The notes beneath the pieces are model-generated. The model worked only from the letters and a program-made list of their open reading frames with translations, did not search any database and had not been told where the DNA came from. Source: Octopus sinensis (taxonomy: Eukaryota). From it: a stretch of 64,000 nt of DNA. This document shows positions 16,535-62,852 of this stretch, one piece after another (position 1 is the stretch's first letter; every line of letters begins with the position of its first letter). The stretch is from contig NC_043000.1 of NCBI RefSeq assembly GCF_006345805.1, positions 67,890,001 through 67,954,000 of the forward strand, given 5' to 3'. The position numbers and the translations under genes are program-made.

Positions 16535-18225
16535 ATTTTTGCAACAATAAAGAAGTACAAATTTCTTTTATTAAAGATAATCCTAGGAATATATGAGTAA
16601 CAAGATACCTTTCTATGATCCGCAAAAACTTTTCCGTGATCGCTGGAGCTGAGAAAAAAAGGGAGCTAAATCACCGTCGGATCACACCCTACTAAGGGCG
16701 CACGCTAGATTATCCTAGATAACCTTTAAACAGATTTGATGGTCACGGATGTAATGTCTTTGTCGTAGATTTACTTGATCAGAGATAAGGTGGAACTAAA
16801 ATACAACAACAATTAATTTATTCACTCCGGAGGAATGACAGGCAAAGATGACTTAGTCGTGTTTGAACTGAAAACGTAGATAGGCCTAATTAAATGTTGC
16901 CGGCCATTTGTGTTATCACCAGGTTAGCCTTGATCGAGTAGACACATAGACAAATATCATCTGTCATCCAGCTTCTGTCCTTTTTATTCTCGGGGATAAA
17001 GACTGTCCGATAAGTCCTGATTAATTCAATACGCTAAAATATAATTTGAAGGATATTAGACTTGTTTCTAGCAGGTGAAATGACACGAAGAGGGCCGTAC
17101 GGAAAGACTTCCGTTCCCCTCCCCATTTTCTCCGAATTTTTTTTGCCAAGTGTTTAGTCCGGTACTGCAGAGCATTTTCTGTTATTCCATCATTGTCATA
17201 TACATAACAATAGTTTCTGTTAATTAACAAAGTACAAAAACCTGAGAATTTATAGTGGTAAATGAGAGATGGCGTTTGCGCCTTTCGGAGGACGAACAGT
17301 ATGAATAGAATCAATGACCAGTCAAACCACGCAACAATCTCGGTTTGCTTGGAGCTCATCTTACGGCCTTACCAAAGTCTCGAAGAAATTAAAATTTCTA
17401 TAACAATTATTCATGAAGCAGAATACAAACTGAAAGATCTCGAACAAAATGCTCCTTTTTAGATTATTTATCATTAACTTTATATTATATATGAAACGAA
17501 ATTTTTAAAAATACGATTTATTTTAATAAATCAATAAAATTTAAGCTTTCTCGTTAAAACCTGTATTTTGATATTCAAACAAGTTCATAGGTTGCTGTTA
17601 TTTTTTAATTATCTTTTTAAGAAAACATTTTGTAGTTAATGCTCTGAGAATATATTGCAAGTTATAGTTTACATCATACAGCCAACCTTTTTAAGATCCT
17701 TTCAAGGTTCCTTTTCCTGTCTTTGAAAATGTTCGTGATACTGTATTTAATTCAATGCATACATATGTGCGTGTAGTTGCATACTTCATACTTATCGGAG
17801 ACGTGTATATCTTGAATATTCTAAATTAAATAGGTTTCAATTCACATGGGTCAAATTTATAATAAGAAACTGGGGAAAGAAGGAGGAAGAAACGTTTTGA
17901 AAGGAAAATGTATCGGAGATAAATGTATTTTCGAATAAAAATTATTTGTAGGTTATTAATGAAAGAAATACTCCCACTTTTATACAGATGTGTAATTTAG
18001 TAATCAGCAACGATTTTAACAAATTATAGCCACAATTTGATTAGTAAACATTTTGGAAAGTAATATCTAGAGGAAAAAATCTGTTTTAATAATTTCCAAA
18101 ATTAATTTTAATAATTCTAATACGTAACTTCCGCCTTAAAATGCCACTACACACGAACCAGGTAATGTCACAAGAAACCATCTGAAAAAGGGGAAGAAAA
18201 GTGAAATTAAAAAGAAATAAATAAA

Positions 18226-18333
18226 TCTACAATATCTCCCATAATTCATCTATTGCACTGGAGGGTTGTTTGCTTGTTCATGTCTCAGCTCCATAGTTTG
18301 GAGCGAGGTGTTATAATATGCCCAAGATGAAAG
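18226..18333 (+). CDS. Putative first exon (5'UTR plus coding 18318-18333, MPKMK-G, phase-1 donor), paralogous to eIF1A exon 1
   Basis: taatATGCCCAAGATGAAAG|gtaa versus eIF1A taatATGCCAAAGAATAAAG|gtaa (21/24). The 5'UTR block 18226-18255 aligns with 52583-52615 (28/33 columns). Confidence 0.65.
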
Positions 18334-20274
18334 GTAACGTACAGTTAGCATGTAACAGTTGCCTGTAAGAATGTAACATGTTCGGTGATTTTGGCTGCTA
18401 CATTTGCCTTCTGCTTGCCGTGCATTTCCTCGTGGATTTATGTGTTGTATGTTTGCTTTGTACTACAAATCTTCCCGTCGAAAAAATAGAACAGTGCTGC
18501 ATAGGCAGCCTGTGAATTAATTCTCTGTCTTTAATAATAATACTTTTGCAATACACGACTTTAAAAAGGGTACATTTTTTTTAGCTAGTTTTAATTATAA
18601 GTTCATACATATGTTTAATGTTTTAATAATTAAAATAACTGTTCTTGTCTATGCTTTTTCTTTTTTTTTTTTCTGGAATGGCCTAATTGCTAGTCTGGGA
18701 ACGTACTCTTGCTAATGTTCTGTAAAATAATTAACAACCATGCTTTTTATCGAACTAACAATTCCAATAATCCTATATCTTATACTTGAAGAAATCAGAA
18801 GTAATTATTGTAATTTCTTCTTTTAGTATGTACTATAACCAAACATATTTTCAATAACTTAAGCTGTTTGCTCCGTGAAAATGTTCAATATACCATCGTG
18901 TAGCCATACATCATTCCTTTGCGCATCTTGCGAAAATACTGTATTTTTCTAACGAAATATTCAAAATTGGTTGTTTGTTTTTTGATTAAACTGTCTATTC
19001 TTATTATTTTTAACTGTAAGCTTATTTTGCATTCTAAAACTCATTTTTATAAGAAATCTGACGTAATTGATTCTTGTAAATTACCAAATAATCGGTAAAA
19101 ATATTTCATTGCTTGTACATGCCTTTTCTCACTGATATTTGTCATGCTATTTATTGGATTAATATTATCGTTAATCGGGAAATTTAATTGTTAAGCTTAT
19201 TTTTTGATTAACAATAAAATGAGTATCTTAATTTTGATTCATAATTCTATACCAACACCTATGGTTTTTCTATATTCCTCGATTTTCCAATCTAACCCGA
19301 TGAATTACTTACTGTTACTCTTTTGCCGACTCAATTCACTGTTAATTTTCTCGGATTGTTTTACAAAATTATTTGCCGGTCAAAATAGTTTTTTGTGATG
19401 TAAGCTTAGATAAACGCCTTATTCGTTATGGGAACACCTGTTCCCTATCTAAGTGTAGATTTTAATCATTTAAATGTGTCTTGGTACAAGCTGCTTGATA
19501 ACTGCTAAATGTTTTTTGACTGCTAAGGGTTGCTGTAGGTAAGTATTTATAAGCTATTGGAATTGAACTGAATACTTCATATTTATACCGTTTATTTTCT
19601 CGGGGGGGTGTGCGAGAAAAAGAGAATTTGAGTCCAGCTATGTAAGCTAACGAAACGTTTCGCCAGTCACGGAGTGCTTAACGCCTGTTGTTTACAGTGG
19701 TGATTTTTTTTTCACCTCTCTGGTTACGTAGGCTGACCAATTAAGCACTCGCTGGTTTGCCTGTAGCAAGACTATAGACACAAAAAGGTCGTGTAATCCA
19801 CCGGAATGGTCGTCTGTAACTTGTGAGATCATTAAACCAACGTTATAATACGACTGACCTCAGGTAACGAGTCGACATAATGCTAAAATTTCAATTTAGC
19901 AGTAAAAACATTTAAAAGTATCTATGATGCGAAGCACCAAAGTTAAGCAAACTTGAATGTATAGATATTATAAGCTTAAAAATTATATTTGTTTTTGAAA
20001 TATCTTTAATTATTTCATTAAATAATTAAAAAAAATTATTCCATTATTTTAGTAAAGCAAAGAAAACAATATCTTGTTGAGGTTTCTATTCAATTTATTT
20101 TCCGATAGGAACTCAGTCTTACCCATTAAATTTTAGTGTGTAACAATTCAGCACCGATAGGTTTATGAGATTAACAAAAAACAATAGCTGTGGTTTCAAC
20201 CAATTAGTTCTGATGAGTTGCTAATCAAATTCCCTCCCTATTTATATTCAAGTTTAAATGTTAGTAGGTATCGT

Positions 20275-20376
20275 CGGCAGAGGTAAAGAAATACGCACAC
20301 CATCCATTTTCGGTGTAACTCTAAACTCTAGTCCTAACCCCAAACTCCGGGTGTGCATATTCTTTACCTTCGCTGG
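20275..20376. repeat. Small fold-back with degenerate (CCCTAA)-like spacer
   Basis: aggtaaagaaatacgcacacc (20281-20301) pairs with ggtgtgcatattctttacct (20350-20369); spacer contains ctaaactctagtcctaaccccaaac. Confidence 0.6.
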
Positions 20377-22133
20377 TAACGTCATTGTTTCCTTTCGCCA
20401 AATTAAATTATATTAAATATATTTGTAAAATGAGCACACATAACAGCAGAGTACAGATAGATATATCATATACCATAAAAAAAAAATTCTTGATTTCTAT
20501 GAATTATCTTCACCTCTAGAGGATGTGTTTTGGCCCCTACCTTCATACTGTATCTCCCTCTCTACTGTATCCCATTCAGTCAAAGGGGTTCATAGTCTTG
20601 CAGATCTCACATTTTTGTTTCCAATAAAAGGACATAGTGCAATAGAAAATATACCAAAGCAAAGACTGAGGCACTGTGCAGTCCTTTCACCCATTGTATT
20701 CTGTCAAACCATCCAATACATGCCAGTCGTGAAGATAGATGTTACATGATGATGTTTTATATATCATCATCATCATCCTCATTTAATATTCATTTTCCAT
20801 ACTGACATGAGTTGGATGATTTCATTGGAGCTGGTAAGACCAAGGGCCATACCAGGCTCCATTGTCTGTTCTGGTATGGTTTCTGCAACTGGATGCCCTT
20901 CCTAACACTAACCACTCCACAGAGCATATTGGGTGCTTTTTATGTGGCATCAACACCAGTATCAATTCTGCTGTGTACTTCTTTGAGTACAGCAATGTGC
21001 CATGTATCTCAGTCCTTAGTCATCTCCTTTGTAAGGCTCAGTGTCTTGAGATCAGCCTTCAGTACTTTATTCTGGGTCTCCCTCCTCCACATGTTCAATC
21101 CACTTAGACACACTCACACACCATGTGGTTTTGTATTCAGTTCAGCTGCATAGTACCGTGGGCAAGAGTCTTCTATTATAACCTCAAGCCAATCCAAACC
21201 TTGTGGGTAGATTTTGTAGTTCATCCTTTGTGTGCATGTGTACCTTTTGTCTTGACATCACGTAATTGTTGTAAATGAGCATCATCTTCATAAAAGCAAT
21301 CTTATTTTGTTTCCAGTCTTCTATGAATTTTTTTTTTTTTTGACCATGAGAAGTATTACCTTGTTTGAAAACAGGTCAGAGTTGGTGGCAGGAATGGCAT
21401 CTGGTGGTAAAAAAGATGTCTCTTCAAATTCTGTCTGACCCATACAAGCATGGAAAAGTGGACATTAAATTATTAAATGAAAATTGTATATGTATTTTAA
21501 ATAATTGATAGGAAAGACAGTGTACTATTATCTTTACAGACCATTTTATAGACCGGACAGGATAGGTATTAGAGTTGCTTTGTTTGCTGTAAGATTAGAT
21601 AACCCTCACCTTCCCATGGTATATTCATTCACTCAAGGTTTTGTAACTGAGGTGAAGAGGAGAAAGTTATGACAGTAAAACCAAAATGGTTTGTGGAAGG
21701 AAACAGGAGTGTTTAGGAGATTGTAATTAGGTTTTGGTGAAATTAATGTTGCAGTGTATTTTGCATTTGAAAGTAGTGGACTTGTAATTGAAGTACTTAT
21801 TCTGCTCTGGTGTTTGGTGTGGAGGAACATCTTGTTGGGATGAAAGGTTGACATAGTTCAGTTAAGGGAGTAATTGGTGAAGTTGGTGGGAGCTTCATAC
21901 AAATTGACTTTGCTTAGTGGTTCACATATATATATATATTTCTGCTCACCTCAGCCATGTAACCACACACATGCCTTTTGTAAACTTCTTTTCTGGACCT
22001 TTCCTTCCTCCTTTTTCTGATGAAGAGCTATGTTTGAAATGTAAAAAACTCCACACTTTTTTCCACTTTTACTGACCATCAAGCTAATATGTTCCATATA
22101 TATTGTTTTGATATTTTTAATATTTGATTTGAC

Positions 22134-22192
<59 letters not shown>

Positions 22193-22193
<1 letters not shown>

Positions 22194-24450
22194 ATCAGAG
22201 TAAGTGACAGAATACTTAAGATTAGAATAGTGCTTCATCATAGATTAGCAACCATTATATCGGCCTATGCCCCTCAGCCAGGGCTACCCGATGGACAGAA
22301 AGACAGTTTCTATGACACCGTACTGCAGACCACCTCATTGACGAACGACAGGGACCTTCTCTTTGTGGCTGGTGATTTCAATGGGCATGTTGGACGACAT
22401 GCTGGGGGCTTCCATGGGGTACATGGAGGCTACGGTTATGGTTCCCGCAACGAGGAGGGAACCAGGCTGCTGGAGTTCTGCGATGCGAATAGTCTTATGG
22501 TTTGCAACACTAACTTCAGGAAACCGACAAACCACCTTGTCACCTACTGATCGGGCCGGCATACTAGCCAAATCGACTACATCCTTGCCAGAAAAAGGGA
22601 AAGATGGCTGCTTATAAATGCCAAAACCTTCCCAGGCGAAGAATGCACCTCACAACATAGACTGGTAGTTAGTGACTTTAGGATCAGGACTAAGAGGGCG
22701 ACTAGAAGACGACCAACATGGAGAAGAAGGGTCTGGAAGCTTAAAGACCCTGTGAATGGACAGAGATTTAGAGACATGTTACTTGAAGCCTTTGACGAAA
22801 TGGAAGGGGGTATAGCTACACATGGGGTAGAAGACAACTGGACACTTCTGAGGGACTACCTGCTGAAAGCCACTGACCAGATCTGTGGCTGGTTCAAAGT
22901 CCCCTTAAGACCCAAAATAACGTGGTGGTGGAACAATATTGTTGACAGGGCTATTAGACCAAAGAAACAGGCTTGGAAGGACTGGAAGAATGGTGGTAGC
23001 AGGGAAGTGTATCAGACTGCCAGAAGGGAAGCTAGGAGACAGGTCTATCTAGCCAGAGGGGAAGCAGATAAGAAAAAATTTGCCAATGTCCTGCGCCGTG
23101 AGGATGAAAGACTTGAGGTATTTCGTGTTGCAAGACAGTGTGTGAGAGAGAATCGTGACGTGATAGGAGAGAAATGTGTTCGCAAGGATAACAGTTCACT
23201 TGCGCTAAATGAGGATGCAAAGAGAGAGGCTTGGAGACGCCACTATGAAAGGTTGCTGAATGAGGAAAATGAATGGGATAAAGAGAGTCTGCCGAATGTT
23301 GACCCAACAGAGGGACCAGCAATCCGAGTTAACAGTTCCTTAGTAGTTAAGGTAATTACAAGCATGAAAACAGGGAAAGCCCCAGGCCCATCAGGAATTA
23401 CTGCAGAGATGCTCAAAATATCTGGTAGTGTCGGCTATAGCCTAGTCACCCGTATAGTTAACCAGGTGATACACGAAGGAGTCATACCCAATGACTGGTG
23501 TAGCAGCATAATAGTCAACTGCTACAAAGGTAAAGGTGACACTCTAGATACAAATAACTACAGGGGTATCAAGTTGCTGGATCAGGTAATGAAGGTTACG
23601 GAGAGGGTTATAGCCCAATTAATTAGAGAGAGAGTTAGCTTAGATGAGATGCAGTTTGGGTTCGTGCCGGGGAAAAGTACTACTGATGCTATATTCCTGG
23701 TAAGCCCCTGTACCTGGCTTTTGTTGACATGGAGAAAGCCTTTGACATGGTCCCCTGATCCCTTATCTGGTGGTCAATGAGGAAACTAGGGATAGATGAA
23801 TGGTTAGTGAGAGCTGTGCGAGCCATGTACAGAGACACTGCTAGTAAGGTGAGGGTTGGCAACGAGTACAGTGAAGAATTCCGGGTAGAGGTTGGGGTCC
23901 ACCAAGGTTTAGTCCTCAGTCCCCTCCTATTTATCATAGTCCTCCAGGCAATAACGGAGGAATTCAAGACAAGATGCCCCTGGGAGCTCCTCTATGCTGA
24001 TGACCTTGCTCTAATTGCTGAGTCACTATCAGAACTGGAGAAGTTTCAGGTGTGGAAACTTGTTGAGGCAAGTGAAAATCAAACCAAATCAAAATAGATG
24101 AACATCAATGGAATTTGTATCTTTGTGGTACCAGTGCCGGTGGCACATAAGAAAACCATCCGAACGTGGCTGTAGCCAGTACCACATCGACTGGCCTCCA
24201 TGCTGTGGGCACGTAACAAACACCATCCGATCGTGGCCGTTCGCCAGCCTCGTCTGGCACCTGTGTCGGTGGCACATAAAATCACCCACTACACTCTCGG
24301 AGTGGTTGGCGTTAGGAAGGGCATCCAGCTGTAGAAACACTGCCAGATCTGACTGGCCTGGTGCAGCCTTCGGGCTCCCCAGACCCCAGTTGAACCGTCC
24401 AACCCATGCTAGCATGGAAAGCGGACGTTAAACGATGATGATGATGATGA
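22193..24450 (+). mobile_element. 5'-truncated RTE-clade LINE (partial APE, RT, internal deletion, 3' tail)
   Basis: ISAYAPQ...AGDFNGHVG (APE); GKAPGP, NYRGIKLL, QFGFVPGKSTTDAIF, GVHQG.VLSPLLF, LLYADDL (RT). Stop at 22548-22550, deletion/frameshift near 23700, (GAT)n tail. Confidence 0.9.
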
Positions 24451-24999
24451 TATATACAAGCATGAATGCAGGGTTATATGAACATGTAACCACACACATT
24501 CTGTATGAGGATGCAAGGAAACATACATGCACATGAGCATACACAGCATTCAGGTGCACATGCATACATCTACATATGTATATGAATGTGTCTTTAAACA
24601 TGTATATGTCTTATTGGCTGTTGGTGCAAAATGCACTCTTGTTTAGATCACATGATTTTAACCTTTCTTGGTCTTGTCAGTGATGGATGCTTGACCACTA
24701 TGTATGCATATACTTATTTATATATATATGTATGTTTGTATATAAGGATCTATGTGTGTGTGCACACACACATGTAAACTATCATCATTTAACATCCATG
24801 TTCCATGCTGGCATTGGGTGGACAATTTAATAAACTCTGGTGGATCCAAGGATTGCATCACATTCCAGTATCTGTTGTAGCATAGTTTCTAGGACTGGAT
24901 ATCCTTCCTAACGCCACCCATTTTGTAGCATATACCACAACCTCTTATACTGCTTTCACTTGCCAGGGATATCTTCTTGCTGGCTTTGTTCAGTTGCTT

Positions 25000-26270
25000 C
25001 GGTTCCCAACTAATCTTATGGGTAAGGCTCACCGAGGCAATGGCTAGTGACTAGGCTCAGTCACTAGTCATTGCCTCAGTGAGGCCTAGTGTTCGAAGGT
25101 CATACTTCACCACCTCATCACAGGTCTTCCTGGGTCTATCTCTTCCACAGGTTCCCTCAAACACTAGGGTGTGGCACTTTTTCACACAACTATTCTCATC
25201 TATTCTTGCCACATGACCATACCAGCACAGTTGTCTCTCTTGCACAGCACATCTGATGCTTCTTAGGTCCAACTTTTCTCTCAAGGTACTTACATTCTGT
25301 CAAGTATGCACACTGACATTACACATCCAGTGGAACATACTGGCTTCATTCCTTGTGAGCTTACGCATGTCCTCAGCAGTCATGGCCCATGTTTCACTGC
25401 CATGTAGCATGGCTGTTTGTACACGTGTCATACAGTCTACCTTTTACTCTGAGTGAGAAGCCCTTTGTCACTAGCAGAGGTAAGAGCTCTCTGAACTTTG
25501 CCCAGGCTATTCTTATTTATAGCAGCTACACTTTCAGTGCACCCACTGACTTGGTCACCTAGGTAATGGAAGCTATCAACTACTTCTAGTTTTTCTCCTT
25601 GAAATGTGACAGAAGTTGTTCTCTGCACATTTTCAGTGTTTACTGCTCCTGAGCATTTGCCAAATACAAACACTATCTTCCCCGTTAGCCTTCCTTTGAT
25701 ATTGCTACACCTCTTATGTGTCCATAGCTTGTACTGGGTACATCTTATAGAGTTGCTACCTACACCTTTTCTACAGATCAAGCAGGGCCATCTACTTGAA
25801 GGGATTTGTGGTTTGTCTACCTTCCTACTTAGAACTTTGGTTTTAGCTAGGTTAACTCTAAGGCCCTTCAATTCTAATCTTTGCTTCCACCCCTGAAACT
25901 TCTCCTCTAGTTCTGATAGTGTCTCAGCAATTAGATCAACATCGTCAGCATAGAGGAGGTCCCATGGGCATCCTGTCTTGAATTCTTCTGTTATTGCCTG
26001 GAGGACTATGATAAATAGGAGAGGGCTGAGGACTGAACCTTGGTGGACCCCCTACCTCTACCCGGAATTCTTCACTGTACTCGTTGCCAACTCTTACCTT
26101 ACTGACAGTGTCCCTGTACATGGTTTGCACAGCTCACAATAACCATTCATCTATCCCTAGTTTCCTCATTGACCACCAGATAAGGGATCGGGGGACCCTG
26201 TCAAAGGCTTTCTCTATGTCAACCAAAGCCAGGTACAAAGGTTTATCTTTGGCTTTTCCCTGTCATACAT
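25000..26270 (-). mobile_element. RTE-LINE RT/C-terminal remnant
   Basis: YRDTVSKVRVGNEYSEEF, KGLRVNLAKTK, EVVDSFHYLG, EGTCGRDRPRKT. Confidence 0.85.
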
Positions 26271-26516
26271 GTAGAAAGAGAAGGTCGACTCAAATATTTG
26301 AGATGATAAGCAATCTAGTATAAATATATATTTTTGTAGAGCAAACTTACTCAGTTTACATAGACTCAAAGAATTAGAAGGGAGAAGGCATTACAAGTGT
26401 GGCAGCTGTTTCTGAGGGCTCAGAGATATTTCATAATGTTAGCACATATAGTTGATAAAAAAAAATTTGCAGCCAGTAACAGAAACAAGCAAACATTGGT
26501 GACCTCCAGAGCCTCC

Positions 26517-26556
<40 letters not shown>

Positions 26557-27583
26557 ACTTGATTGTTTATCATCTGAAATTTTTGAGTCTGCCTTTTTTT
26601 AAAATCTTGTATACATGTTTATATATTTTGTACGTTAAAACCCAAGGTTTTATCTGTTTATTTGAATCATTATCTCCATATCTGCTCACTTGGATTCCAC
26701 TTATAGCCACTCATTACCCTGCTGATGTAGATATCGAAGTGTAAGTTCAAATCATTTGAATGCTACTGAGTATTTTCGATACTGAAATTCTCTTGATTTC
26801 ATCTATTGAAACATATATAAACATTTAAATATCCAGATTTCCATATTTGTTTGAGCTGGACAGAATTTATTGAGACAGATTTTCTATTGCTGGATGCCTA
26901 TTTTGTCACCAATCTTCACTCATTTCCAAGCAAGGTAATGTTTCCTCATGGTCAGACATGTTCTCACAGAATATTGGAAAAGAGTGACACTGATTGTATC
27001 ACTGTGACACTCATTTACACATGATGTCAAACACACACATTCCTCTTTCAGTTTCTAACTACCAAATCCACTCAAGAAAGCTGTGGTCAACCCAGGACTA
27101 TAGCTGCAAAACTCAAAAATAACTATATCTTCTTTTATACAAAAGACTCGAAGCAGCATGTGACTCCTTGTTTTCCCTTCTTCTCAACCATCTTTATTAT
27201 GTTTGTTATACATGTTTAAGTAAATTATATATGCCAAACTCACCTTTAAAATACCAATATAATTTCAGCTAAGCTGTAATATAAGAACACTTATTCTGTG
27301 AAAAAAGTATTGTTATATTTCTACTTTTCATACATATAAACACAGCATTAAATGATTTTTAACTTATGTTTGAAGTTAAACTGGTTTTAATTACACAGCA
27401 TCAAACTAATACACCAGCTTGTTGTTCCCTCACCGGTCTTGTTTTGTTTTCTGTACATTTGAACTAATATATATGTGTGTGTGTGTGAATACTTTGAGCT
27501 GCGCAGATAATACCGGACTGACTTGGTGCTTCAACTTAAGTAACTAATACAGCTGAATCTTAATTATTTCTCTGTGTGTGTGC

Positions 27584-27621
<38 letters not shown>

Positions 27622-27628
27622 TATTTAA

Positions 27629-27847
27629 CCCTTTTGTTACCATATTTCTGTTGAGATGCTCTGTGTTTCTTTCAATTAATTTTAAATATAACAAAGAATT
27701 TAGTAAAATAACTTAATCATTAAGATAGTTTTAAGAACATAAATTGTGACTAAGGTTTGATGGAAGATTTTAATTCAGAACTTTTGAAAACAAGACATTT
27801 GTACTACAGAGCCAGAAGCGGTTTCAGGTGGGTTGGTATCAAAAGGG
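27629..27847. mobile_element. piggyBac-type MITE (TTAA TSD)
   Basis: TTAA-cccttttgttacc ... ggtatcaaaaggg-TTAA (27625-27628; 27848-27851). Confidence 0.8.
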
Positions 27848-28099
27848 TTAATAAAGACAATATGTGTTTTTATATGCTACTATTATTAGTTTCATGTGAT
27901 GAGAGTATGCCATGTAGATTGTTAAACCCAGCAGGAACTAAAATTGGGCTAGTAGTTAAAAAAAAATACTAAGAAACATTAATAATAAAATTAAAGAGAC
28001 CAAGTTTTACTGTAATAGTTTAGTTCAAGAACATTAAGAATAAACATAGGGCTAGTTTTACTCAGTTTGACATAGTGTTATCCCTCCATACCAAGATTG

Positions 28100-29300
28100 C
28101 TACTTGATAAAGCCATCAAGTTTGCTAAATCATGTTGATATAGACCCTGTAAACCTAAGCTTTATCACCATGTGAGGAAAACACTACTGTTTAGTAAGAG
28201 CTCAGCATGGATAAAAATGTTAGATAATGATGAATTGTTTGATGTATCAATGGAATTATGTAATAGTGCTGATGTCTGTGATCTTGTGGGTCTCTGTATT
28301 AAACACATTGAGATCTAATGATGTTGGTCTATACTGAAATGACAAATTGGGTATTTCCCATGGCTGTAATGATCACACCCTAGATAAATTTAGGAGTCAA
28401 CTTACTTCAACCTTCAGTCAATTAGGCCTTAAAATCACAGTTGCTACTAATCAGTCTAAAGTTGATTTTTTAGATGTTTCATTAGTCCTGAACTCCTCTT
28501 ATAAACCTTATCATATGCCCAATGAGAAACTTTTTTATATACATAGCCTTGTCACCCTGTAGAATCTTAAAATCTAATAGCTAACATTAGTAACAGAATT
28601 TCTAACCTTTGTTCCTCTAAAGAAATTTTCAAGAAGGCAGCCACCTACTACAACAGTGCCCTAACTAACCGTGACTTTAAGGATGAATTAATAACCCATC
28701 TAATATTAATAGGAATGATAATAATATGACCTAAGAAAATCCCCCCCTCCATTAATGTAAAAACTAACACAGGTAAAAGATTCTTGTCTCTCCTAGACAA
28801 AACATTTTCCAGAAAATCACAGGTATGGGAAAATATTTAACAGGCATACAGTGAAATTATATAGCTGCTGCCCCAATATGAAAAGCATCATTACATGAGA
28901 ACAACACCAAGATCCCTCTCCCAGTTGTAACTTTCGAGACCCAGGAACCTGTCCACTCAACCAGAGATATATGATTAAATCTGTCATATATGAGGCAGAA
29001 GTTACAGCAATGCAATATCATAACACAATCTTTAAAAAGAGCTATATCAGACTGAAGGCAAATTCAGAAATCACTATGCTAATCACATATCTTCCTTCTG
29101 ACACAAGGACATAAAAAAAAGTAAAGCTAGCAACATATGGGGTTTGAAGTTGAAAAATCCACGCCATATGTTAACAGATCAAAAAATGTAAGCTATGCAT
29201 AGCTGAAAGAACTAGGATCTAAAAACACTAACACACTATTGAATTCTAGATCCAAAATTTTCAGTAGTTGTAAGCATATGGCTAAGTTCCTGTTGATGAA
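28100..29300 (+). mobile_element. Penelope-like element remnant (RT plus GIY-YIG), heavily degraded
   Basis: FDVSM..ADVCDLVGL; TFSQLGLKIT...KVDFLDVSL..YKPY..PN..YIH; NVKTN.GKRFL.LLDK; C....CPL...VIYEAEV. Confidence 0.7.
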
Positions 29301-29935
29301 TTGGAAAGTGCCGCCCTTTCTGGTTTGAACAGGTGTACCACAGACTCTAAGCTGCTATCTTATCAAACTTATATTTTACAGTCAAAGGGAAGAGTACTCT
29401 GATCCCCCTCTCTTTTGCTTCTTTGTTTTCCAATTTTTCAACTTTCTAACTTCTTTCTCGCCGTTTCTCACTTTTTCTTTCATCCTATTGTCCCATTTTC
29501 AGTTATGTCATGTAGTCAGTGCCCGAAGGTTGTGCTAGGACACCAGATGTGTTAAAAAAAATACTGTCTGGCATGTTCTCATCACATGAAACTAATAGTA
29601 GCACATAAAACATTGTTTATTAAATAATATTTATCTCTTACCAGGTAGAGTACTTTTTTTGTGGTCTTACTATCACAGAACAGTACACCATACACACACA
29701 CATAAAATGTTATATATATATATATATATATATATATAACATTTTTCCATTTTCTTCATTAAAATATACAATACCATACATTACTGCTGTGTTAACTAGG
29801 CTCCCTGTTGAAAGGTTACTGGTATATGTAATCTAAGGTACTTCAGTTAAATCTTGTCTTGTGATTTGGACAATCAGTGTTGTGATGTTGCTTTTGTGTA
29901 GTGGTTAGTATGAGTATATAGATGTGCATATATAT

Positions 29936-30268
29936 ATATATTGTATAAAAGATTGTGGGTAAGGCCAAAACAATGCGAAGTAAATGCTAGATAAATCACA
30001 AGAAAACTAATATGTGAATTAAAGTAGACTTACCTTATATTCAGTATTTCGGGGTTATGACCCCATTTTCAGGAAATTGACAAATGTTGCCAATATGCGT
30101 GTGTGTGAGCGCTCACGCACATCAGCAACATTCGTCAATTTCTTGAAAATTTTTGTCATAACCCCAAAATATTGAATACATGATAAGTCTACATTAATTC
30201 ACATATTTGTTTCTTGTGATTTACTTTGCATTGTTTTGGCCTTACCCACAATCTTTTATACAATATAT
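29936..30268. mobile_element. TA-flanked fold-back element (~160-bp arms), probably a Tc1/mariner-type MITE
   Basis: ttgtataaaagattgtgggtaaggccaaaacaatgc... pairs with ...gcattgttttggccttacccacaatcttttatacaa; centre near 30110. Confidence 0.85.
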
Positions 30269-30297
30269 TCTACACAATGCTTCACAGTAATTATTCC

Positions 30298-30328
<31 letters not shown>

Positions 30329-30684
30329 TACACATGGATATGTATGCATATATATGTTAAATTCCATAAATTAGTAAAAAATTTGTGAAGTACAAGATTT
30401 GTTAGAGACTTTATATTATTAAAATGTATGGTATTTATATGTAATTCTGATGAAAAGAAACATTTTCTTCATGGAAGGGGCCCCACTCAAAAAGTTACAT
30501 TTCTTCCTCAATGTGTAAAATATTTTCTCTATTTTAATTTCTACTGCTTCACTATTTATTCTTAAAGTAAGAATTATTTTTCTGTATTGTTTTGTTCTCG
30601 ATTATATGTATATAAATATTTATTTTAAGAATTTTTTAAAGACACATTTTAAGAGTTCTTTTGTGATGTCTTTTTTTTTTCCAG

Positions 30685-31769
30685 AACTTGATAAAATTAG
30701 GCTGCAGAGGCAAGTGTTTTCTATGAAACTGCAAAATCGAGACTTTCGAGACATGATATTCTTACATTACTGTGAGGGAAAAACTGTTGCTGAATCCCAA
30801 GAGGTACTTCATGAAGTATTTCAAGACCAAAGCCCCCCATATTGTACTGTTGAATTTTGGTTTAAAGAATTTGAACAAACTAATGAATGTGCGGATAGCG
30901 AAATTCTTAACACAACTGTCACACCTCAAAACATTGAAGCAGTTAAACTGTTATTAAAAGAAGATTCTAGAGTGACTTATAAAGAGTTAGAAAGTGTATT
31001 GAATATTGGATCAGAAAGTGTTCGATCAATCCTTCATGATTATTTATATGTTCGCAAACTAAATATGTGCTGGGTTCCTCAAATCTTAAGTGAAGAGCAG
31101 AAGTTGGCCAGAATGGAATGGTGTGAGTTTATGCTAAAAAAGTTTCAAAATGGAGCACATCAGAAAATTGAAAATATTGTTCTTGGAGTTGAATTCCAAC
31201 TTTATCAATATACTGAATCTAAAAAGCCATCTACAGTATGGACTTTCCTCGATGAAGATTACTATCTTAAATGGAAACATCCACCAAATGTACAAAAAAA
31301 AACAATTGTAAATTTTTTTAGTAAATCTGGTAACCTTGCTACTATTTTACTCAAAGACAAATCCAAAGTTAATCCTAGTTGGTATTTAACAAAATGTTTA
31401 CCTGAATTATTTGAAAAGATCAAAGAAGTAAGAAAAGATTCTGGACTCCAAGGTATTCTTCTCCATCATAGTAATATAAATGTTCTTACTGCTGCAGTGA
31501 CTATGGACTGTCTTGCTGAGAATAGCATTCAATTAATTACACATCCTGCTCACAGTCCTGATTTATCTCCTTGGGATTATTTTGTATATCCTAAAGTGAA
31601 AAAAGATCTTATTGGAATTAAATTTAACAAGCCTGGAGATGCTCTTAGTGCATTTATTCAAGCTACTATGTTGCTAACCCCTCAAGATTGGATTGAATGC
31701 TTTGAAAGCTGGTTTAAACATATGGAATTATGTGTGGAATCTCAAGGGAACTATTTCAAAGTAACTTGA
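30685..31769 (+). CDS. Domesticated mariner-family transposase exon, catalytically inactive (SETMAR-like transposase domain, no SET domain seen)
   Basis: Intact frame with two HTH regions, WVPQIL and HSPDLSPWD. Triad D/D/D34 is V(31188)/S(31470)/D(31575). Polypyrimidine plus CCAG acceptor at 30671-30684 (phase 1); no TIRs. Confidence 0.85.
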
Positions 31770-34700
31770 CTATATGATTTTTTTTTTTTTTATGCAGAAT
31801 GAAACTAAACATAAATATGTTTAAAAAGGAAAAGAAGTTATGTTTTTTTCAAATTACCTTCTTACCAAATTATTAGATTTTGTTTATGTAAAAAAAATTT
31901 TTCTAAGTGTATTGTAATTGTTAGATTAGTTCATGAATGTCTTTAGAGTTCTTAATGACTTTTTCTGTGATAGTATGTTTTTTTATAATAGAAATATATT
32001 TTTCAGTTGAAGAGGAAAACCTCACTAATTATAGATACTAAATACAATATTAACACTTGAAAATCTGAAAAATACTGAATCATAGGAAAATGTTCAAAGA
32101 AGTTTTAAGTTTAAAAAGAAACCCACTAACTTTGAATCAAATCTTCAATCTCAGTGAATATTCAGAGGCTTATACTGAGCAAAGGAGCTTGTCAGTTATT
32201 ATGAAGGCAGCTGTTTTCTAGCTACTTGAATTACTAGAAAAAACAGCCAAATTTCCATCAAATTGCATACTATACCTTCTTAAAAGCAAAAAGCACATTA
32301 AATACACACTACATCTGAAGTAAAAAAAAAAGATGGGATGGTCACAATTAGAATGCTTTTGATCACAGATCTATTTGCTCAGTTTAGGCTGACCTGAGCT
32401 AAACAACCACAACAATATCATTGTAAAAATATTGGCTATATTATTTATATTAAGCTGTCTTTTAAATTTCATCAATTACATGTCTTCACCTTCATTCAGA
32501 TGCGATATGTGAAACAGGTTCAGGATTTCATACATTGAAAGAATTCTGCTTGTGAAACAAAAACTTACTGGTTCCTTACTGTTTACTTGTGTTTGACTCA
32601 AAACAGCTTGCAGGATGCTTTTGTGATGTTTCAGGTTTTCTGGTTTACAAAAGGAGAAATAAGTACCCTGTTCTCATTGTTTTGTTTTGCTTTTTAATTA
32701 TTTATTTTAATATATATATTTTTTTTTCATGTTGCATGGGTTAAATGGGTTTGCAATATATTTTTCTATTTGTCTCATTTCTGTAAGGCTCCTCAGGTGT
32801 AGCCTAACTAATTCTCAAGTCTTCCTTGGTTTGATTCTAAAATGAATATTCTCCACCATCACTTCACTGCGCTTTCACTCAGCAAGCATCAGTCAGTTAC
32901 ATTAGTATTGACCTATGCTTTGATATGCAGTTATTTTCTCACTTCATGTTTTTTGTACTTCCACTAGATTACAATCAATCATTTCTCTCTCGTCACTGTA
33001 GTTTCTCTGCTTTCACTGCTATACATCTTTTATACAAGCTTGATATAGCCTTGCTCTCATACAGTGAGTAGAAACCTTTATTACCAACAGATATGCCTTC
33101 TCTAATCTCTCTACTTCCAAATTCCAATCACCATGCTGCCATTGACTCTACATGTAGCTCTAATTATATCATCTAGTTAGCAGAACTTATCTATAACTTC
33201 CAGCAAACAATTTAAACTATTCACAGTCCTCAGTGCATCGTAGCTGCTCATACTGTCATTTTCTTTATGTTCTTTTCACTTACACTATTAATTTTATGAT
33301 GTCAGTTCCTGCTAAAATCTCACTACACTTCCTGAATACACAGTATTGTGCTCCTGTACATTTTCTGAATGTCAAAAAATGTTACACTCTTGATTATGAT
33401 TGGAATTTTGTGATCTCTTGTATGAAATAATTAATTTGCTGCCTGTCAGTCTTTTAACTCTAGCCTGAGATAGAGTTGATTGCTTGGTTGCAAAGCCTTC
33501 ATTCTCAAAGTAAATTACTACTGTGACACAAACATATTTTGAAAGTTTCAGTAACTATCATGGAAGATCTTAAGTTCTCCTTATGTCATAAATTGCTCAA
33601 CTGATCTCTGTTGCTGACCATATTCCATTTATATTCCTTTTTCAGCAATTTTGCATGGTGACACTTGCATGCCACTTTCTTTTCTTTGTCTCTGGGAACA
33701 AATTTTTTTTTCCATCCAATCAGGATTCCTCACAATACAGACCTAAACATATCACTCATTTTAGCTTCATACTTTGCAGTATCCAACTATGAGTAATTTT
33801 CTGTCCATTCAGCTGTCTTTCTTTATATAAAAAGCTGTGCTTATCTTGTTTTAGTTTGAACTCATCTAGCATTATTCTGATTTGAGGCACATTCCTTTCC
33901 AGATAAGAAAAAGAAAAAAAATTAGTTCATAATTGTCAAACCCTTAATCAGAAGAATATTAATCAAGATCTCATTCTCACCTAATTGGTGAAAAACCTGT
34001 TTTTTGGCTTGCTCTCAGAGGTTTGTATTACAGACACTGAATTGATTTTCTTCACAGAACTCCAGAAACCTTACGATGCTTAGAATATTGATTGGCAATA
34101 CAACAGGCACCATGATACTCATTAGACATATGTAGGATTAACAAACAGTAGAATTGATTTTATGAGGCTCTAATGAAAGCTAAGCTGTCAAAATAGGACC
34201 ATCATAATCCCAGTTGGAGATTTCATAATAGATATTCAAGTGTTGGTTGATGATTGAAAGCTGCTGAATAAATTTATACATCTTAAAGATAATCTGTAAA
34301 AAATTTCATTTATCATGTAAAACTTGATTCATACTTTTTTTATTTTAAGATTTCAAAGATGCTGCTAAATTTTGAAGCAAAGTCAGTGTTTTTCAGCTTA
34401 AAATATTACACAAAATATATATCTGTTAAAATATATTCAACAAAACATATAACTTAATTTTTTTTTTTTTTACATCACAGATCATGTCTTTTGTAAATAT
34501 TTATACCATGATAGTATTTTTCTAAATTTACTCCATGCAGCTTCTGGTCATCCTTCATAATTCAAGAAAATGTTTTGAATCATTCTTGCTTGCAAACAAT
34601 GTAAGTATAGCAATTAACTGTGAATGGAGCATATGTGCTTCATTGTTGTAATTGTATCACTCATTATAAAAATCATACTTATCTCATTGGAAGAGATGTT

Positions 34701-36599
34701 AACCTGGTTCTTGTTTTAACTATGTTTAGGGCAATATTCAGTGTAAATCAGAAAATAAAAACTTACAAATTCCTTAATGTGCTGTTGATATATTTTGTTC
34801 TAAATGCCAGCATAAACTTTTGAGAAAGTTTTTATTCTACTTCATTATTTAAATGATCCTTTTGTTTCTTTTTGACTGTGAAATCTTTCCCTAAGGAATC
34901 TGTTGTCTCACACTAATCAGGTTTACCAAGCCAACAAAGAGTGCACCACTCAGCATGTTAAAAGTAGTGACCAAATCTCCTTCAAATCACATCCCATCAT
35001 CTTCAATTAAGAGATGGTTTTGGCTCAATATAAAAAATAAAAAGAACTGCTCCAAATATTATTGGTCATATCATCATCGTTTAACATCCGTTTTCCATGC
35101 TAGCATGGGTTGGATGGAAATATATGTGACAGAATTGTTTTATCTATATCAAACTTATTTGCATAGTAAGAGCAAAATATCAAGATTGAATCAGTTGTCT
35201 ATAAGTGAAGCAGCTGTTGAATTATCTTAAGTAAATAGTGAATTTTTTTTTTTTAAATTTCAAGTCAAATGAATAAACTTCCAATGTAACTAGTTTTACC
35301 AACTCTAGAATGCAATATCATACTCTTTATGATGAAACAAATATAAGTTGACTACACTGTATGCAGGCCAGATAACTACTGTATATACTGAAGTTATAGA
35401 TCAACATTTTCAGACCAATTTTTAAACCTGTAATTAGGTCAAACATGCCTCAATTCTGCAGGTATTGCCACAGCCCAAAATGTTTGCTTTTTCAAAAGAA
35501 TACCTGTATAGTGTTCAGCTTTCTAAATATAGGTTTCAAAACTGGTCTTGAAGTGCATGAGAAATGTGTTCATATGTTTGGTTGGTAATATAAATGCCTA
35601 TATGAAGCTCTTACAAATAATCAAGCAAATACGCAAACAAAATCACATATTTAATTACCTTAGTTATACATCCTGTATCACTGCTTGTTGGTAGTTGGCA
35701 TGTCTTTGCACAGAACACTACATCAGATTTTGATACCAAAGTTTGTGCTTTATTTCAGTATTGAATTGAGATGTGTATCTAATCTGAAGTTGAGACTTCA
35801 CATGTGCTTCTGAATAGTAGCATAACCTTTGTGGCCAAACATTTAATCATAGGATAATTTGCTCAAATAGACACTTGGAAACTCTGTAATGCAGAATTAC
35901 ACTGGCAGTCATTTAATTCTCACTGGAAATATTCTCGTACCATATTGGTTTCTAATTTTAGTTCAAGGCCAGCAATTTCAGAGGAGAGGTAAGTCAATTA
36001 CTTTGACCTCACTGCCCAACTGGTATTTTTTTCATCAACCCTGAAAGGATGAAAGGAAAAGTTGAACTCAGATTGTAAAGGTAGATAAAACACTGCTAAG
36101 CATTTTGCTCAGCGTCCTAACAATTCTGCCAGCAAGCTGTTTTGTTCTTATGCTATATTATTTCTAACAAAATGAGTCCCAGTAAACTGAAAAATCATTA
36201 TTGAAGTTTTTGAAGTTAGCAAGTCTTTGGAACTCATTCATTAACTTTAAAATTTTGATTAGTTTTCAATATTAATATGAAACATTTTGCAGTGACTTTA
36301 AAGTAGGGAAATGTATATTACCATTTAATAGTTGATAGTCAAAAAGGTTAAGTTTTATCTCAAAGGCACAAGTAAAGTCATATAAATTTATTTCTAATAT
36401 ATTGTCCTTGAGGCTATGTATTCAAGTAATTTAAATGCTCTAACTACCATGTAAACTAGACATTGAATTGTTTGACTATTTTTCAGTTTCTAGCATATCC
36501 CTTCTTTTCTGTTGCAGAAATATCTATTTCACATGACAATTCATAAAATCACTTTAGTACAACTCCCCACCTTAACCAACAAAGTTCATTATGTTATGG

Positions 36600-37260
36600 C
36601 AGTCTAGTCTACATTGTGACTTGTAAAAACAGCTGAACTCTGTGGTTCAGACTTTATAACATCCATAGCATTACACTTCAGTATTTTACTGCACAACTAC
36701 TATACCCCAAATGATGGAATGGACATAATGAAATTGATAGTTTAAGTTCACAGCTAGCAGTTATTTTAATTTTGCAGCCAAATTTTCTATCAATCATTTG
36801 CAGCGCTCCAACTGTATGAGACTCATACTTTGCATACCCCTGTGAAACTAATAAAATCCATTCTTGATATTCCTTCATTAGTACCAGTTCTACAAATTCA
36901 CATGATACATGCATATTTTTATCCATATCATGTATGTAAACATCATTTACCCATGTCATCATTTGCAATGGAAAATGTTAAGTAATATCTTTGAGTTTCC
37001 TATTAAGATTCTTCCATAAGTCACCAATTCTTTCTGTAACTGTTTCTTGAGACACAAGAGGTTTGACTTTTTTTTTTAGCAAAATCTTTTGCAGCTATCA
37101 ACCTACATTTCTTTATAAAATTCCCTTCTGATAATGGTTTCTGTGACAGCTTATAGCTTGTCTTAACTGCAATATCACTGACTTTATGGGCATATTTAAA
37201 TACTGACAATATTCCATGATGGCTCCTCTACAATTCTCTCAAGGGGTTGAAGGTTCAAGA
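36600..37260 (-). mobile_element. hAT (Charlie/SPIN, GTF2IRD2-like) transposase remnant
   Basis: AVKTSYKLSQKPLSEGNFIKKC.L.AA...; TVTERIGDL..NL...LK...FSIA.DD. Confidence 0.55.
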
Positions 37261-49216: not shown

Positions 49217-50099
49217 CAGGGTGGCCCAGAAGTCACGAAGGGGTTTCAATATTTAATAACTTTTAAAATAATTATTCAATTTTTATTTTATTTCAGATTT
49301 ATATGAAGAAGACTCTAAAATTTAAGCGTAGAAAAGTACACTACTGAACAGCGAACACATATATTGTGAAATTTCATTATCAAAATCAAGGATCAATAAT
49401 TCGGATTCAATGAGCATATCGTTGTCATTATGGAGCAATGAATTGTCCAAGTGAATCAATCGTCAAGCGATTAATTTGTTTTGAGGATCAAGGATCAGTA
49501 AGTGACCTTCCAAGAAAAGGCAGACCTCGCTCCGTTAGAAATGAAGCCACGGCCAGGCGTATGGGGGAGAGTATTAAAGAAGACCCGACAACATCAACGC
49601 GAAGACACTCTGGACAAATTGGAGTCTACAGGATATTGCTCTAACGAATTTTAAAAACAATGGAACTTTTACCATATGAAATCCAATTGGTGCAACAGCT
49701 GGAAGAACCAGATTATGCTGCTATATTATGATATGCCACAAGATTCCAAGAATTAGCAAGAGATCTATCTCGTTCTCCAGACTTTTTTCTATGGGATTAT
49801 CTTAAGGAAAAAGTTAATGTCAACAAGCCCCCCACCCAAAAAAAAAATTGCAGACTTAAAAAATAACATTGTTTCAGAAATCAGATCACTGTAGCCACAA
49901 ACGTTAAGGTCTGTTATAGAAAGAGCATGTTTATGCGAATTGGAAAATGGACGCCATTTAAAAGATATCATCTTTCACACCTAGGGAAAAAAATCTCACA
50001 CCCTTTTTTATAATTTACCAACTAAAATATCGCAATTTTTAAACAAAAGAAATGAGATATTAAATATTGAAACTCCTTCGTGACTTCTGGGCCACTCTA
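49217..50099 (+). mobile_element. Internally deleted Tc1/mariner element (DUF4817-type HTH), ~42-bp TIRs, TA TSD
   Basis: cagggtggcccagaagtcacgaaggggtttcaatatttaata pairs with tattaaatattgaaactccttcgtgacttctgggccactcta; TA at 49215-49216 and 50100-50101. FEDQGSVSDLPRKGRPRSVR; PDFFLWDYLKEKV. Confidence 0.85.
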
Positions 50100-51070: not shown

Positions 51071-52657
51071 AAATAATGGTAATGGTATATAACTTTCTTA
51101 CTTTCATCTTTACAAAAATATACTAATTCTTAGCAGGATATTGATTCCTTACTGATTCAAAACATTCACAAACAATTGGATACCAATAAAGGAAAGAATA
51201 CAACAATAAAATAAGGAATCAGTTTCGAATTTGGAGGAATCATTTTCTAAGGAGTTTTTTATGTGTGAAAATAGTTAATCATAAAAATCGCCCATTTTTT
51301 CTACCTCCTTATAGAGCCTCGATATTGACTAGAATACATGACACTGATATAGACAAATGACTAAGAAAGCACGATTCTATGTTTAGTATTGGCCCGTCGG
51401 CAGACTTTGGTGCCTGGGGTTGTTTCAGAATATTCTTGGCGGGCACTAATTAGTATTGCGAGAAGATTTTTGGAAACTGCATTTTCTAAATTTGAGGGTG
51501 TAGTGCCGTCCAGTGCCCCTACCCACCACCTTAGCGACAAGCATGGTTTGGCTTACTCCATTGAAAAATTTATTAAATACTGTGACAGTCAAATGTTTAG
51601 ACCGCGTCTAATAAAAGAATGATACACGACCTGTTTGTGAACCCTGGGAATTTGCCCGTGTGGATTTAGGTATATGTCCCAAATATTGGTAGCATTGTAG
51701 TCATCGCAGATTCATCTGTGTTCATTAATTAACATTCGACATGGTTGAACAATCAATCCCAACCACTCGGGATTCACAGTACGGGTTGTACTGTTCATCC
51801 TTTCGATCGCTGAATATAAAACGTGTCTCGCAAGACCTTCCTCCTTTCGGCTGACTTTCTTGAGTCAACACCTCACGCTCGTACACCAATCTGTTACACG
51901 GTCACCCACTTATAGCCGAGTGGACTGAAGCAGCGTGAAACGAAGTTTTTTGCGTTCATTTGAAATTCAAAACCATCTTAATTTCTTTAAAGATGAAAGG
52001 TTGTTTACCTTTTTCTCAACACTCACAACTCAACTCTAATGAGAAATACTACTCTAAACTATTCAATTTTTATAATGAAGTTGGATCCACCAACTTCATT
52101 ATAGCAGTTGGAGCCACCAAATATTTTAATTGTATCTGGATGTAGTGATGATATGAAACACGCTGAAGACCCTCATCATTACCTCTGGAATGTACTTAAG
52201 TTTGTCACTGCTAACACATTTTTCAAATAAAAACTATCTCTAGTGCAATTCATCAAGTTCATCTACTTTTAGACGTATGGCATGGTAAGCGTTAATTGTC
52301 TATGATACCACTTCCACTTTTTGCAGTCAAAATAACTTTTTGACCTGGAAAACACAAAAGCGTCAGTCAATGTACACATAAACTGTTAATTACGATATTT
52401 TGCTTATGGAACAAAATACAAAATCTTTTTTAAATATAACTTGATCTTCCTCTTCAGGAAATTACTGGATATGGTTTAATTTTAATTTGTAAGTGTATAT
52501 ATAAAAATAAATGATTAAAAAATACAGTTACTGAAAGCCTACAAGTAAGAACCGGAACTTGAAAAATTAGAAGGTCACTTCCTCTACAGATATTTCCCAT
52601 CATTCCATCTATTTGACACCTTATCTATTTTATTGAGTTAAATTACGAAGCTTTAAT

Positions 52658-52673
52658 ATGCCAAAGAATAAAG
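52658..52673 (+). CDS. EIF1A: Eukaryotic translation initiation factor 1A, coding exon 1 (MPKNK-G)
   Basis: ATGCCAAAGAATAAAG|gtaag, 16 nt, phase 1; same size as vertebrate EIF1AX coding exon 1. Confidence 0.9.
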
Positions 52674-56539: not shown

Positions 56540-57375
56540 CACTTTGACAGTTACAGCTAATAGTAGCAGACACGGTCAAATTTTGCTGGAAGCTCCCTCC
56601 AGTGTGCGTCAAGCTTGTTCTTGAAGGCATTGACTGATGGAGCTGCAACCATACTATTTGGCAAACTGTTGAACCTGCAGTGTGATCTTTCTAATTTCAG
56701 GCTGTGTCCTTGTATTTCTGCCTTGGAAGTAGTTGAATTGGGGGCAGTTGGTCAGGTACAGGTCGTGCGTATACTTATACATGTTGATCATATCCCTGTT
56801 TGAGACTAGGCAGGTTTAGTGCAGCCAAGCGCTCTGGGTATGGCTTTTCTTTCAATGATGCAGTGAGTTTGGTGGCACACCGCTGAACATCCTCCAACTT
56901 GCAACACATTGCCTTATGCCGGGGTTGCCAAACTATGTGTCTATATTCAAGAATCAGGCGAACTAGAGACTTGTACAGCTGGACGAAGACAACAAGGGTA
57001 ATGAAGTCAAATGATTGGCAGATAACTCCAAGGATTCAATTTGCTTTTGCAGTTGCTTGGTTTATATGGTTCCTGAAGGTCAGCCCTTTGTCGATCAAGA
57101 TGCCAAGATCCCCCTCTACTTCACTTCCTGCTAGCTCCACCACAGTCCATTCTCCTTGTGCATCCTGGCCTCTTATGTAGTATTTCTTGTCTGTCTTTGG
57201 GTTCCCCACTCTCAAGACTGAACACTTCTCAGGATGGAACCACATTTGCCAGTTTGACCACTCATGGAGGCGATCCAGGTCGTCTTGCAGTGTTGCCATG
57301 GTCACATTGTCATTCCTTGCGAAGATCTTTGTGTCGTCAGCAAATAACCTGAAGTGGCTCTGGACATGCTGAGGT
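56540..57375 (-). mobile_element. CR1-clade LINE 3' fragment (RT C-terminal half)
   Basis: RLFADDTKIF...LQDDLDRLHEW..WQM.FHPEKCSVL...DLGILID..LTF..HI...TAKAN; NSLPNSMVAAPSVNAFKNKLDAHW. Confidence 0.85.
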
Positions 57376-62768: not shown

Positions 62769-62852
62769 GTAAGGGAGGTAAAAACAGAAGGCGAGGTAAA
62801 AACGAAAGTGAGGATGTGAAAAGAGAACTTGTTTTCAAAGAAGATGGTCAAG
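62769..62852 (+). CDS. EIF1A: Eukaryotic translation initiation factor 1A, coding exon 2
   Basis: ttttttag|GT AAG GGA GGT AAA AAC AGA AGG CGA GGT AAA AAC GAA ... GAT GGT CAA G|gtatgt = [28 protein letters not shown]; 84 nt, in frame with exon 1. Confidence 0.95.

Follow-up and report, generated by a model that had tools for sequence, protein, structure and literature searches.

Few domesticated mariner transposases are known, and the textbook case is SETMAR (Metnase; primate SET joined to Hsmar1), in which the catalytic change is a single D>N. Host-transposase fusions can be formed by alternative splicing, where transposon-borne splice sites join a transposase open reading frame (ORF) to host exons (Cosby et al., bioRxiv 10.1101/2020.05.07.082677). 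The Drosophila genes CG14478 and CG4570 are reported to have kept only one of two parts, the DNA-binding module or the DDE fold (PMC13548663). Here we describe a locus in a 64,000-nt stretch of the Octopus sinensis genome (chromosome 4, C4 67890001-67954000; hereafter the window, whose numbering is used throughout). In our judgement it probably carries a two-exon host gene, found in octopods, that encodes a domesticated mariner transposase of 366 amino acids (aa) and whose first exon derives from exon 1 of the adjacent translation factor gene eIF1A. The gene model comprises the following features, in which slashes within sequences mark splice junctions and UTR and CDS stand for untranslated region and coding sequence.

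18012..18317, plus strand: upstream region and 5' leader, kept between Octopus and Argonauta by blastn and by MAFFT alignment with Argonauta L001 9718-10051
~18125-18147, plus strand: AACTTCCGCCTTAAAATGCCAC, within the upstream region and leader
18318..18333, plus strand: coding part of exon 1, ATGCCCAAGATGAAAG (MPKMK and the first base of the next codon), with the phase-1 donor G/gtaacg
18334..30684, plus strand: intron 1, 12,351 nt; its Argonauta counterpart measures 3.55 kb
30685..30722, plus strand: start of exon 2, former mariner 5'UTR, read as (E)LDKIRLQRQVFS
30723..31769, plus strand: transposase-derived CDS from the ancestral Met (MKLQNRDF...) to the stop, with HTH_48, a second helix-turn-helix (HTH) and an RNase-H-like domain
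31798..31854, plus strand: conserved 3' block, presumed 3'UTR, 86% identical with Argonauta
34541..34602, plus strand: exon 3 of a 413-aa isoform, entered from an alternative donor AAAG/gtaact between 31761 and 31762
36519..36607, plus strand: final coding exon of the 413-aa isoform, with the stop TAG at 36605-36607

The promoter of the gene is presumed to lie within 18012..18317. The phase-1 acceptor, ...ttttccag/AACTTGAT, falls between 30684 and 30685, and the frame is open from there to the TGA at 31767-31769, giving a predicted junction AAGATGAAAG/AACTTGATAAA. An earlier preliminary description of this DNA, made from the letters alone, had paired this acceptor with the phase-1 donor of exon 1 and obtained a 366-aa ORF; both hold, and the spliced product (MPKMK followed by ELDKIRLQ…KVT) is letter for letter the Octopus vulgaris protein CAI9721526.1. 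Because the stop-to-stop frame of the transposase exon is already open from 30519, upstream of the acceptor, the ORF by itself is no proof of the splice; the annotated products begin MPKMK/ELDK in two species, with donor and acceptor both in phase 1. The O. vulgaris annotation drew on Iso-Seq and RNA-seq data, and PASA contributed its isoforms (PMC10700109), so its alternative forms rest on transcript assemblies. Expression evidence for the transposase gene is at the level of annotation, consisting of the 366-aa form and a second isoform of 413 aa (CAI9721525.1) from this pipeline. The alternative donor of the longer form overlaps the last codons of the shorter one. Argonauta lacks this donor, and the longer isoform is therefore probably either confined to Octopus or noise. 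Public records name the gene either a hypothetical protein or a 'Mos1 transposase HTH domain-containing protein', and our literature search found no published description of it.

In Argonauta hians, an 86% identical ortholog (GAB1597971.1, 361 aa) has the N-terminus MPKMKELDKIRLQ / MPKMKELDKIRLQRQVFSMKLQ (MPKMKELDK). Its gene spans 4.6 kb and lies between a cyclin-like gene and eIF1A, with order and strand as in the window; the succession of cyclin, transposase gene and eIF1A is common to Octopus and Argonauta. A blastn comparison of the two loci returned collinear conserved blocks at the cyclin gene, the exon-1 region (18012-18374), 18673-18732, the transposase exon (30671-31788, 84.5% identical), 31798-31854 and the eIF1A exon-1 region, and no further conserved exon. 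The 60-nt block at 18673-18732 lies about 350 nt past the start of intron 1 (CTGGAATGGCCTAATTG...GTCTGGGAA), is non-coding and is 82% identical with Argonauta, while the 3' block at 31798-31854 is displaced in Argonauta by an insertion with a 44-nt inverted repeat (L001 14721-15000). The record GAB1597971.1 carries the name 'serine-rich adhesin for platelets-like isoform X6'; no serine-rich exons that would account for it were found in the window or in the ortholog, and the name is probably a misleading best-hit transfer.

Omega (dN/dS), estimated by NG86, was 0.076 for the whole CDS of the window against Argonauta at a synonymous divergence (dS) of 0.79, and 0.11 (dS 0.13) against a 97%-identical Octopus contig (L002). 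Taken separately against Argonauta, the DNA-binding part gave 0.04 (dS 0.88) and the catalytic-fold part 0.10 (dS 0.77). These values indicate that strong purifying selection has held the transposase exon since before the Octopus/Argonauta split. They also bear on the suggestion that gene predictors merely joined a decaying transposon to a chance upstream ATG. Such an annotation artefact might be suspected, as HTH_48 is the only Pfam domain above threshold and the catalytic residues are gone, but the 361-codon frame is unbroken in three octopods at the omega and dS just given, the gene is single-copy and syntenic, and conservation with Argonauta falls abruptly just upstream of the acceptor. 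The idea is scarcely credible, being already contradicted by the evidence gathered.

Across the 12 full codons from the acceptor to the ancestral Met, the extended frame differs from that of Argonauta by 3 synonymous and 0 non-synonymous changes. Since all the differences are synonymous, this stretch appears to be translated, as expected if translation enters from the upstream exon. The same pattern argues against a start at the ancestral Met at 30723 (MKLQ...), in which case exon 1 would serve only as untranslated leader and neither the upstream ATG nor the ELDK extension would matter. Relatives do begin at that Met, including a chromosome-17 copy as annotated in O. bimaculoides, and the N-terminal 14 residues of the AlphaFold model are predicted to be disordered, with a predicted local distance difference test score (pLDDT) below 50. 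Against this, besides the synonymous differences (3 of 3), the 16 coding nt of exon 1 are identical in Octopus and Argonauta and the upstream ATG is called by both annotations, which leaves the downstream start very improbable. Conservation of the ATG at 18318 and its donor in related species, on which the preliminary description had made its model depend, is thus seen in Argonauta; the comparison of gene order and dN/dS that it had proposed, run here on octopods, likewise came out in its favour.

The protein is recognisable as a complete mariner transposase. Its sole Pfam match is HTH_48 (E 6e-8, 33.1 bits, cut-off 24.1), and phmmer against the PDB aligns residues 24-358 with the Mos1 transposase (E 1.4e-21). 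The AlphaFold model has a pLDDT of 81, rising to 86-93 in the N-terminal HTH helices. Foldseek searches with this model matched full-length Mos1 (E 7e-21), and its catalytic domain gave template modelling (TM) scores of 0.85-0.90 against Mos1 and SETMAR, with 0.86-0.89 for the SETMAR structures. The full Mos1-type architecture, with two helix-turn-helix motifs and an RNase-H-like domain, is thus predicted to be retained. The DD34D triad, in contrast, is not intact. In alignment with canonical relatives, the first catalytic aspartate is replaced by V (GDETW now GVEFQ) and the second by S (HHDNA now HHSNI), while the third is retained in Octopus and is E in Argonauta. Additionally, the GRP linker that joins one HTH motif to the other has been lost by deletion. 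Judging from these substitutions, the transposase is catalytically dead, and yet the gene is not a pseudogene. The preliminary description had called the transposase dead, which is apt for its catalysis and wrong for the gene. The product probably binds DNA sequence-specifically, likely as a dimer, and would be unable to cut it. It contains no eIF-1a or other host domain, the host part amounting to 5 residues.

In the octopus assembly searched (2.72 Gb), the transposase gene is single-copy. The next match, on chromosome 17, is 48% identical, and after it come more than 100 mariners with identities of 24-30%; a search of 1.84 billion representatives returned no relative closer than the 48% paralog. 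Around the ORF in Octopus and Argonauta, a search for terminal inverted repeats (TIRs) found only weak AT-rich inverted matches, none TIR-like and symmetric about the ORF as at the chromosome-17 copy. The transposase exon is an immobilised mariner copy; being single-copy, syntenic, under purifying selection and without convincing inverted repeats, it bears the usual marks of a domesticated transposase. The chromosome-17 copy is placed as follows.

C17:15188340-15189440 (locus L004 1498-2601), minus strand: mariner relic, closest relative of the transposase gene (48% at the amino-acid level) and of the same mariner subfamily

This relic keeps the DDD triad and the GRP linker, and has a 27-nt TIR-like inverted repeat (81% complementary) placed symmetrically about its ORF. 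Its own nearest relatives are ordinary mariners from many animals. The 5'UTR of the relic carries ...tttcag/AGCTTGACAAAGTTAAGCAGCAGA, the same junction, cag/A(A/G)CTTGAYAAARTTA (cag/A(A/G)CTTGA), as that used by the chromosome-4 gene. Because the relic has it too, the acceptor would have pre-existed in the mariner 5'UTR; by this comparison, the ancestral element presumably already held both the acceptor and the stop-free 38 nt behind it, so that only a phase-1 donor upstream was needed. Upstream of the relic itself no exon of the MPK-K type was found in the adjacent 10 kb or in the stretch 20-30 kb away, the 10-20 kb between being left out. In O. bimaculoides the chromosome-17 copy is annotated as a single-exon 'SETMAR-like' gene starting at the Met (P0005). 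Between the two species its CDS shows 11 differences in 1062 nt (L018 3001-4062), 8 of them synonymous and 3 not, within a 4.1-kb locus that is 94.7% identical. This single-copy ORF may be a second constrained mariner-derived gene.

The origin of exon 1 was sought in eIF1A, which lies downstream on the same strand and to which the following features belong or compare.

18226..18255, plus strand: 5' block tctaca-atatctcccataattcatctattg, similar to the eIF1A leader block
52583..52615, plus strand: eIF1A leader block tctacagATATTTCCCATCATTCCATCTATTTG, conserved in Argonauta eIF1A, presumed parent of the block at 18226; acceptor-like cag/ between 52589 and 52590
52658..52673, plus strand: coding part of eIF1A exon 1, ATGCCAAAGAATAAAG (MPKNK), phase-1 donor with gtaaga; presumed parent exon
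62769..62852, plus strand: eIF1A exon 2, with a phase-1 acceptor; exons 3-5 lie past the window end

The exon copies at 18318-18333 and 52658-52673 are both present as first described, with 21/24 nt matching when flanks are included, and GCTT(G)TAATATGCC.AA.A..AAAGGTAA is common to both exon-1 regions in both species. In Octopus a second collinear block of 31 columns lies 60-90 nt upstream of exon 1; local alignment of 18226-18255 with 52583-52615 scores 38, against a mean of 20 and a maximum of 33 in 300 mono-nucleotide shuffles (z 6.9). The pattern ATGCCNAARNNNAARGGTRA has 18 matches in the genome on both strands (5 for the reversed control), two of which are exon 1 and eIF1A exon 1, 34 kb apart and on the same strand. 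At 18 matches in 5.4 Gb of strand sequence, ~3e-4 would be expected within 50 kb on the same strand. The pattern ATATYTCCCATMATTN{0,1}CATCT matches only these two sites genome-wide, with 0 control matches. As both patterns were designed after the pair had been seen, these counts overstate the significance, and the shuffle z-score is the fairer measure. The MPKNK start is conserved in all animal eIF1A homologs inspected, which points to eIF1A as the parent. From this resemblance we consider it likely that exon 1 is paralogous to eIF1A exon 1. No copy of the 246-nt exon-1 region occurs elsewhere in the genome, and Pfam eIF-1a matches are confined to the true eIF1A gene downstream and two unrelated loci. 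We also considered the 5' block as a common promoter motif (ZNF143/Staf-like, TTCCCA..AAT), a candidate rejected, like a repeat, on the grounds that its pattern occurs at two sites only in 2.72 Gb. As a separate observation, ATGCCAAAGAAAAAAGGTAA (MPKKK/gt) was found 7 times, at C27 12059706, 12192254, 13099574 and 13119645 and on three unplaced contigs; these copies may belong to a repeated gene or element, unconnected with the Pfam eIF-1a matches, whose first exon is shaped like that of eIF1A.

Several points weigh against this derivation and the gene model it completes, beginning with the post hoc choice of patterns just mentioned. The likeness to eIF1A is limited to ~24 and 31 nt, some 55 nt in two blocks, and a 16-nt gap in Argonauta removes most of the 5' block ahead of the MPKMK exon; that species does keep the exon block and, at eIF1A, the 5' block. 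Comparison of 16-52 kb with 52-64 kb for residual segmental duplication returned only transposon matches and the exon block. Age and polarity are bounded solely by the Octopus/Argonauta split; the eIF1A homolog search returned no squid or cuttlefish genome locus, and two eIF1A mRNA contigs, 95% identical at the protein level, have an unrelated 5'UTR. Further, the evidence for splicing consists of two annotations and the substitution pattern, and the loss of the GRP linker may have altered the DNA binding that we infer.

The shortness of the likeness, its decay in Argonauta, the lack of any other duplication trace and shuffle scores that reach 33 against the observed 38 would all suit a real gene whose 5' exon arose de novo or from some other host sequence, and in which MPK-K, the 16-nt length, phase 1 and the TAATATGCC context arose by chance or by convergence on a good initiation context. 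But the number of ATGCCNAARNNNAARGGTRA matches expected so close by is far below one, the second block, collinear with the first, occurs nowhere else in the genome, and the same adjacency and exon recur in Argonauta. We therefore regard an unrelated exon as unlikely, though deserving of weight, and favour descent from eIF1A, for which the rarity of the sequences and the two collinear blocks speak, albeit over a length of only ~55 nt. This much of the preliminary description stands, as does its statement that no further eIF1A exons were copied (tblastn at E<=10 found no copy of exons 2-5 between 18 and 52 kb). The homology it had drawn between the two 5'UTRs is supported by the alignment score and by the restriction to two sites genome-wide, and weakened by the state of the block in Argonauta.

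The preliminary description had also spoken of a duplicated eIF1A promoter. The copy of the start-codon exon is supported; the shared upstream block, however, probably belongs to the transcribed part, as leader or exon, and not to the promoter, because an eIF1A model from a related species reads it in frame after the acceptor-like tctacag/. In that record (P0194, 209 aa, from a related octopus) eIF1A is extended at the N-terminus; the extension reads the leader block in frame (window 52588-52657), with a Tc1/mariner-like fragment ahead of it that matches 49438-49560 at 81%. It implies an upstream transposon-derived exon spliced into tctacag/ATATTTCCC (52589/52590). In the copy of the leader block upstream of MPKMK, the G of this AG is missing.

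Such a model raises the question of whether transposase gene and eIF1A form one complex locus, in which MPKMK would be an alternative eIF1A first exon (N4M) and the transposase an alternative terminal exon within a long intron 1. Each of the two first exons closes with a G in phase 1, and the acceptor of eIF1A exon 2 is in phase 1 (the junction would be AAGATGAAAG/GTAAGGGAGG); O. vulgaris transcripts run beyond the transposase exon to 36.6 kb, and the related-species model joins an upstream exon to the eIF1A leader. Yet the genes are separate in the O. vulgaris and Argonauta annotations, whose products are of 366/413 aa and 361 aa only, and no product starting MPKMKGKGG was seen among the eIF1A homologs, so a single locus seems quite improbable. 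A bolder variant, which we rate as a long shot, is that the MPKMK exon acts as a second functional eIF1A first exon, yielding both the transposase-derived DNA-binding protein and an N4M eIF1A isoform that tunes start-codon selection; if true, a tamed transposase would be coupled to translation-factor regulation in octopods.

Under the favoured origin from eIF1A, exon 1 and part of its leader would be a diverged duplicate of eIF1A exon 1, 34 kb downstream on the same strand. The duplicate would provide the ATG, 5 codons (MPKMK) and a phase-1 donor, which would splice into the acceptor already present in the transposon 5'UTR. As the 38 nt of former UTR are stop-free in frame, reading would continue across them to the transposase ORF. 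The ATG at 18318 would serve as start codon, and an eIF1A-like 5' module would drive expression. Exon duplication and mariner insertion may have occurred in either order; the mariner could, for example, have first landed in eIF1A intron 1. Since exon 1 would have been duplicated from eIF1A, the host contribution would be an expression and translation-start module and not a protein domain.

Octopods have transposon-rich genomes, and the surroundings of the gene contain several further elements.

22128-24097, plus strand: LINE endonuclease and reverse transcriptase (RT) fragments in intron 1
25057-26051, minus strand: LINE endonuclease and RT fragments in intron 1
44.3-47.8 kb, plus strand: Gypsy-type RT-RNaseH-integrase element between the transposase gene and eIF1A
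57036-58160, minus strand: RT and Pif1-helicase (Helitron-like) pieces in eIF1A intron 1
10.9-12.1 kb, minus strand: GC-rich tandem array (GC 0.53) with long repetitive open frames (RTDGAFTCHRHG...)

Short pieces resembling the tandem array recur at 20.8-21.0 and 24.1-24.4 kb and in Argonauta at L001 18978-19119.

Taken together, the octopod gene would be a well-supported molluscan example of transposase domestication, in which the complete fold is conserved at omega ~0.08 while the active site is dead. Its birth can be traced to a cryptic acceptor in a transposon 5'UTR and a start-codon exon apparently copied from eIF1A, a housekeeping neighbour. It suggests that a host can equip a captured transposase with a mere expression and initiation module and no protein domain, and it is a candidate lineage-specific DNA-binding regulator in octopods.

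Like SETMAR, the octopod gene is an immobilised mariner that was captured when an upstream host exon came to be spliced to an acceptor at the 5' end of the element, and in both the whole transposase fold is under purifying selection while the catalytic triad is altered. The analogy with SETMAR drawn in the preliminary description therefore carries over for the splicing logic, including the acceptor in the transposon 5'UTR, and fails for domain fusion: SETMAR joins a functional SET methyltransferase domain, whereas the host part here is 5 codons and an expression module. Moreover, the host exon is apparently a duplicate of the neighbour's exon and not the neighbour's own, two catalytic aspartates were lost (to V and S), and the lineages are primates and octopods, respectively. 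The fusions of Cosby et al. share the splice-site mechanism; those vertebrate genes typically add KRAB, SCAN or BTB to a transposase DNA-binding domain, whereas the mollusc gene has no host domain and a full-length transposase. Finally, CG14478 and CG4570 of Drosophila are, like the octopod gene, Tc1/mariner derivatives without TIRs that exist as single copies in syntenic positions and evolve under purifying selection, but the octopod gene differs from them in keeping both domains, with a dead active site, and in having a spliced 5' exon of recognisable host origin.

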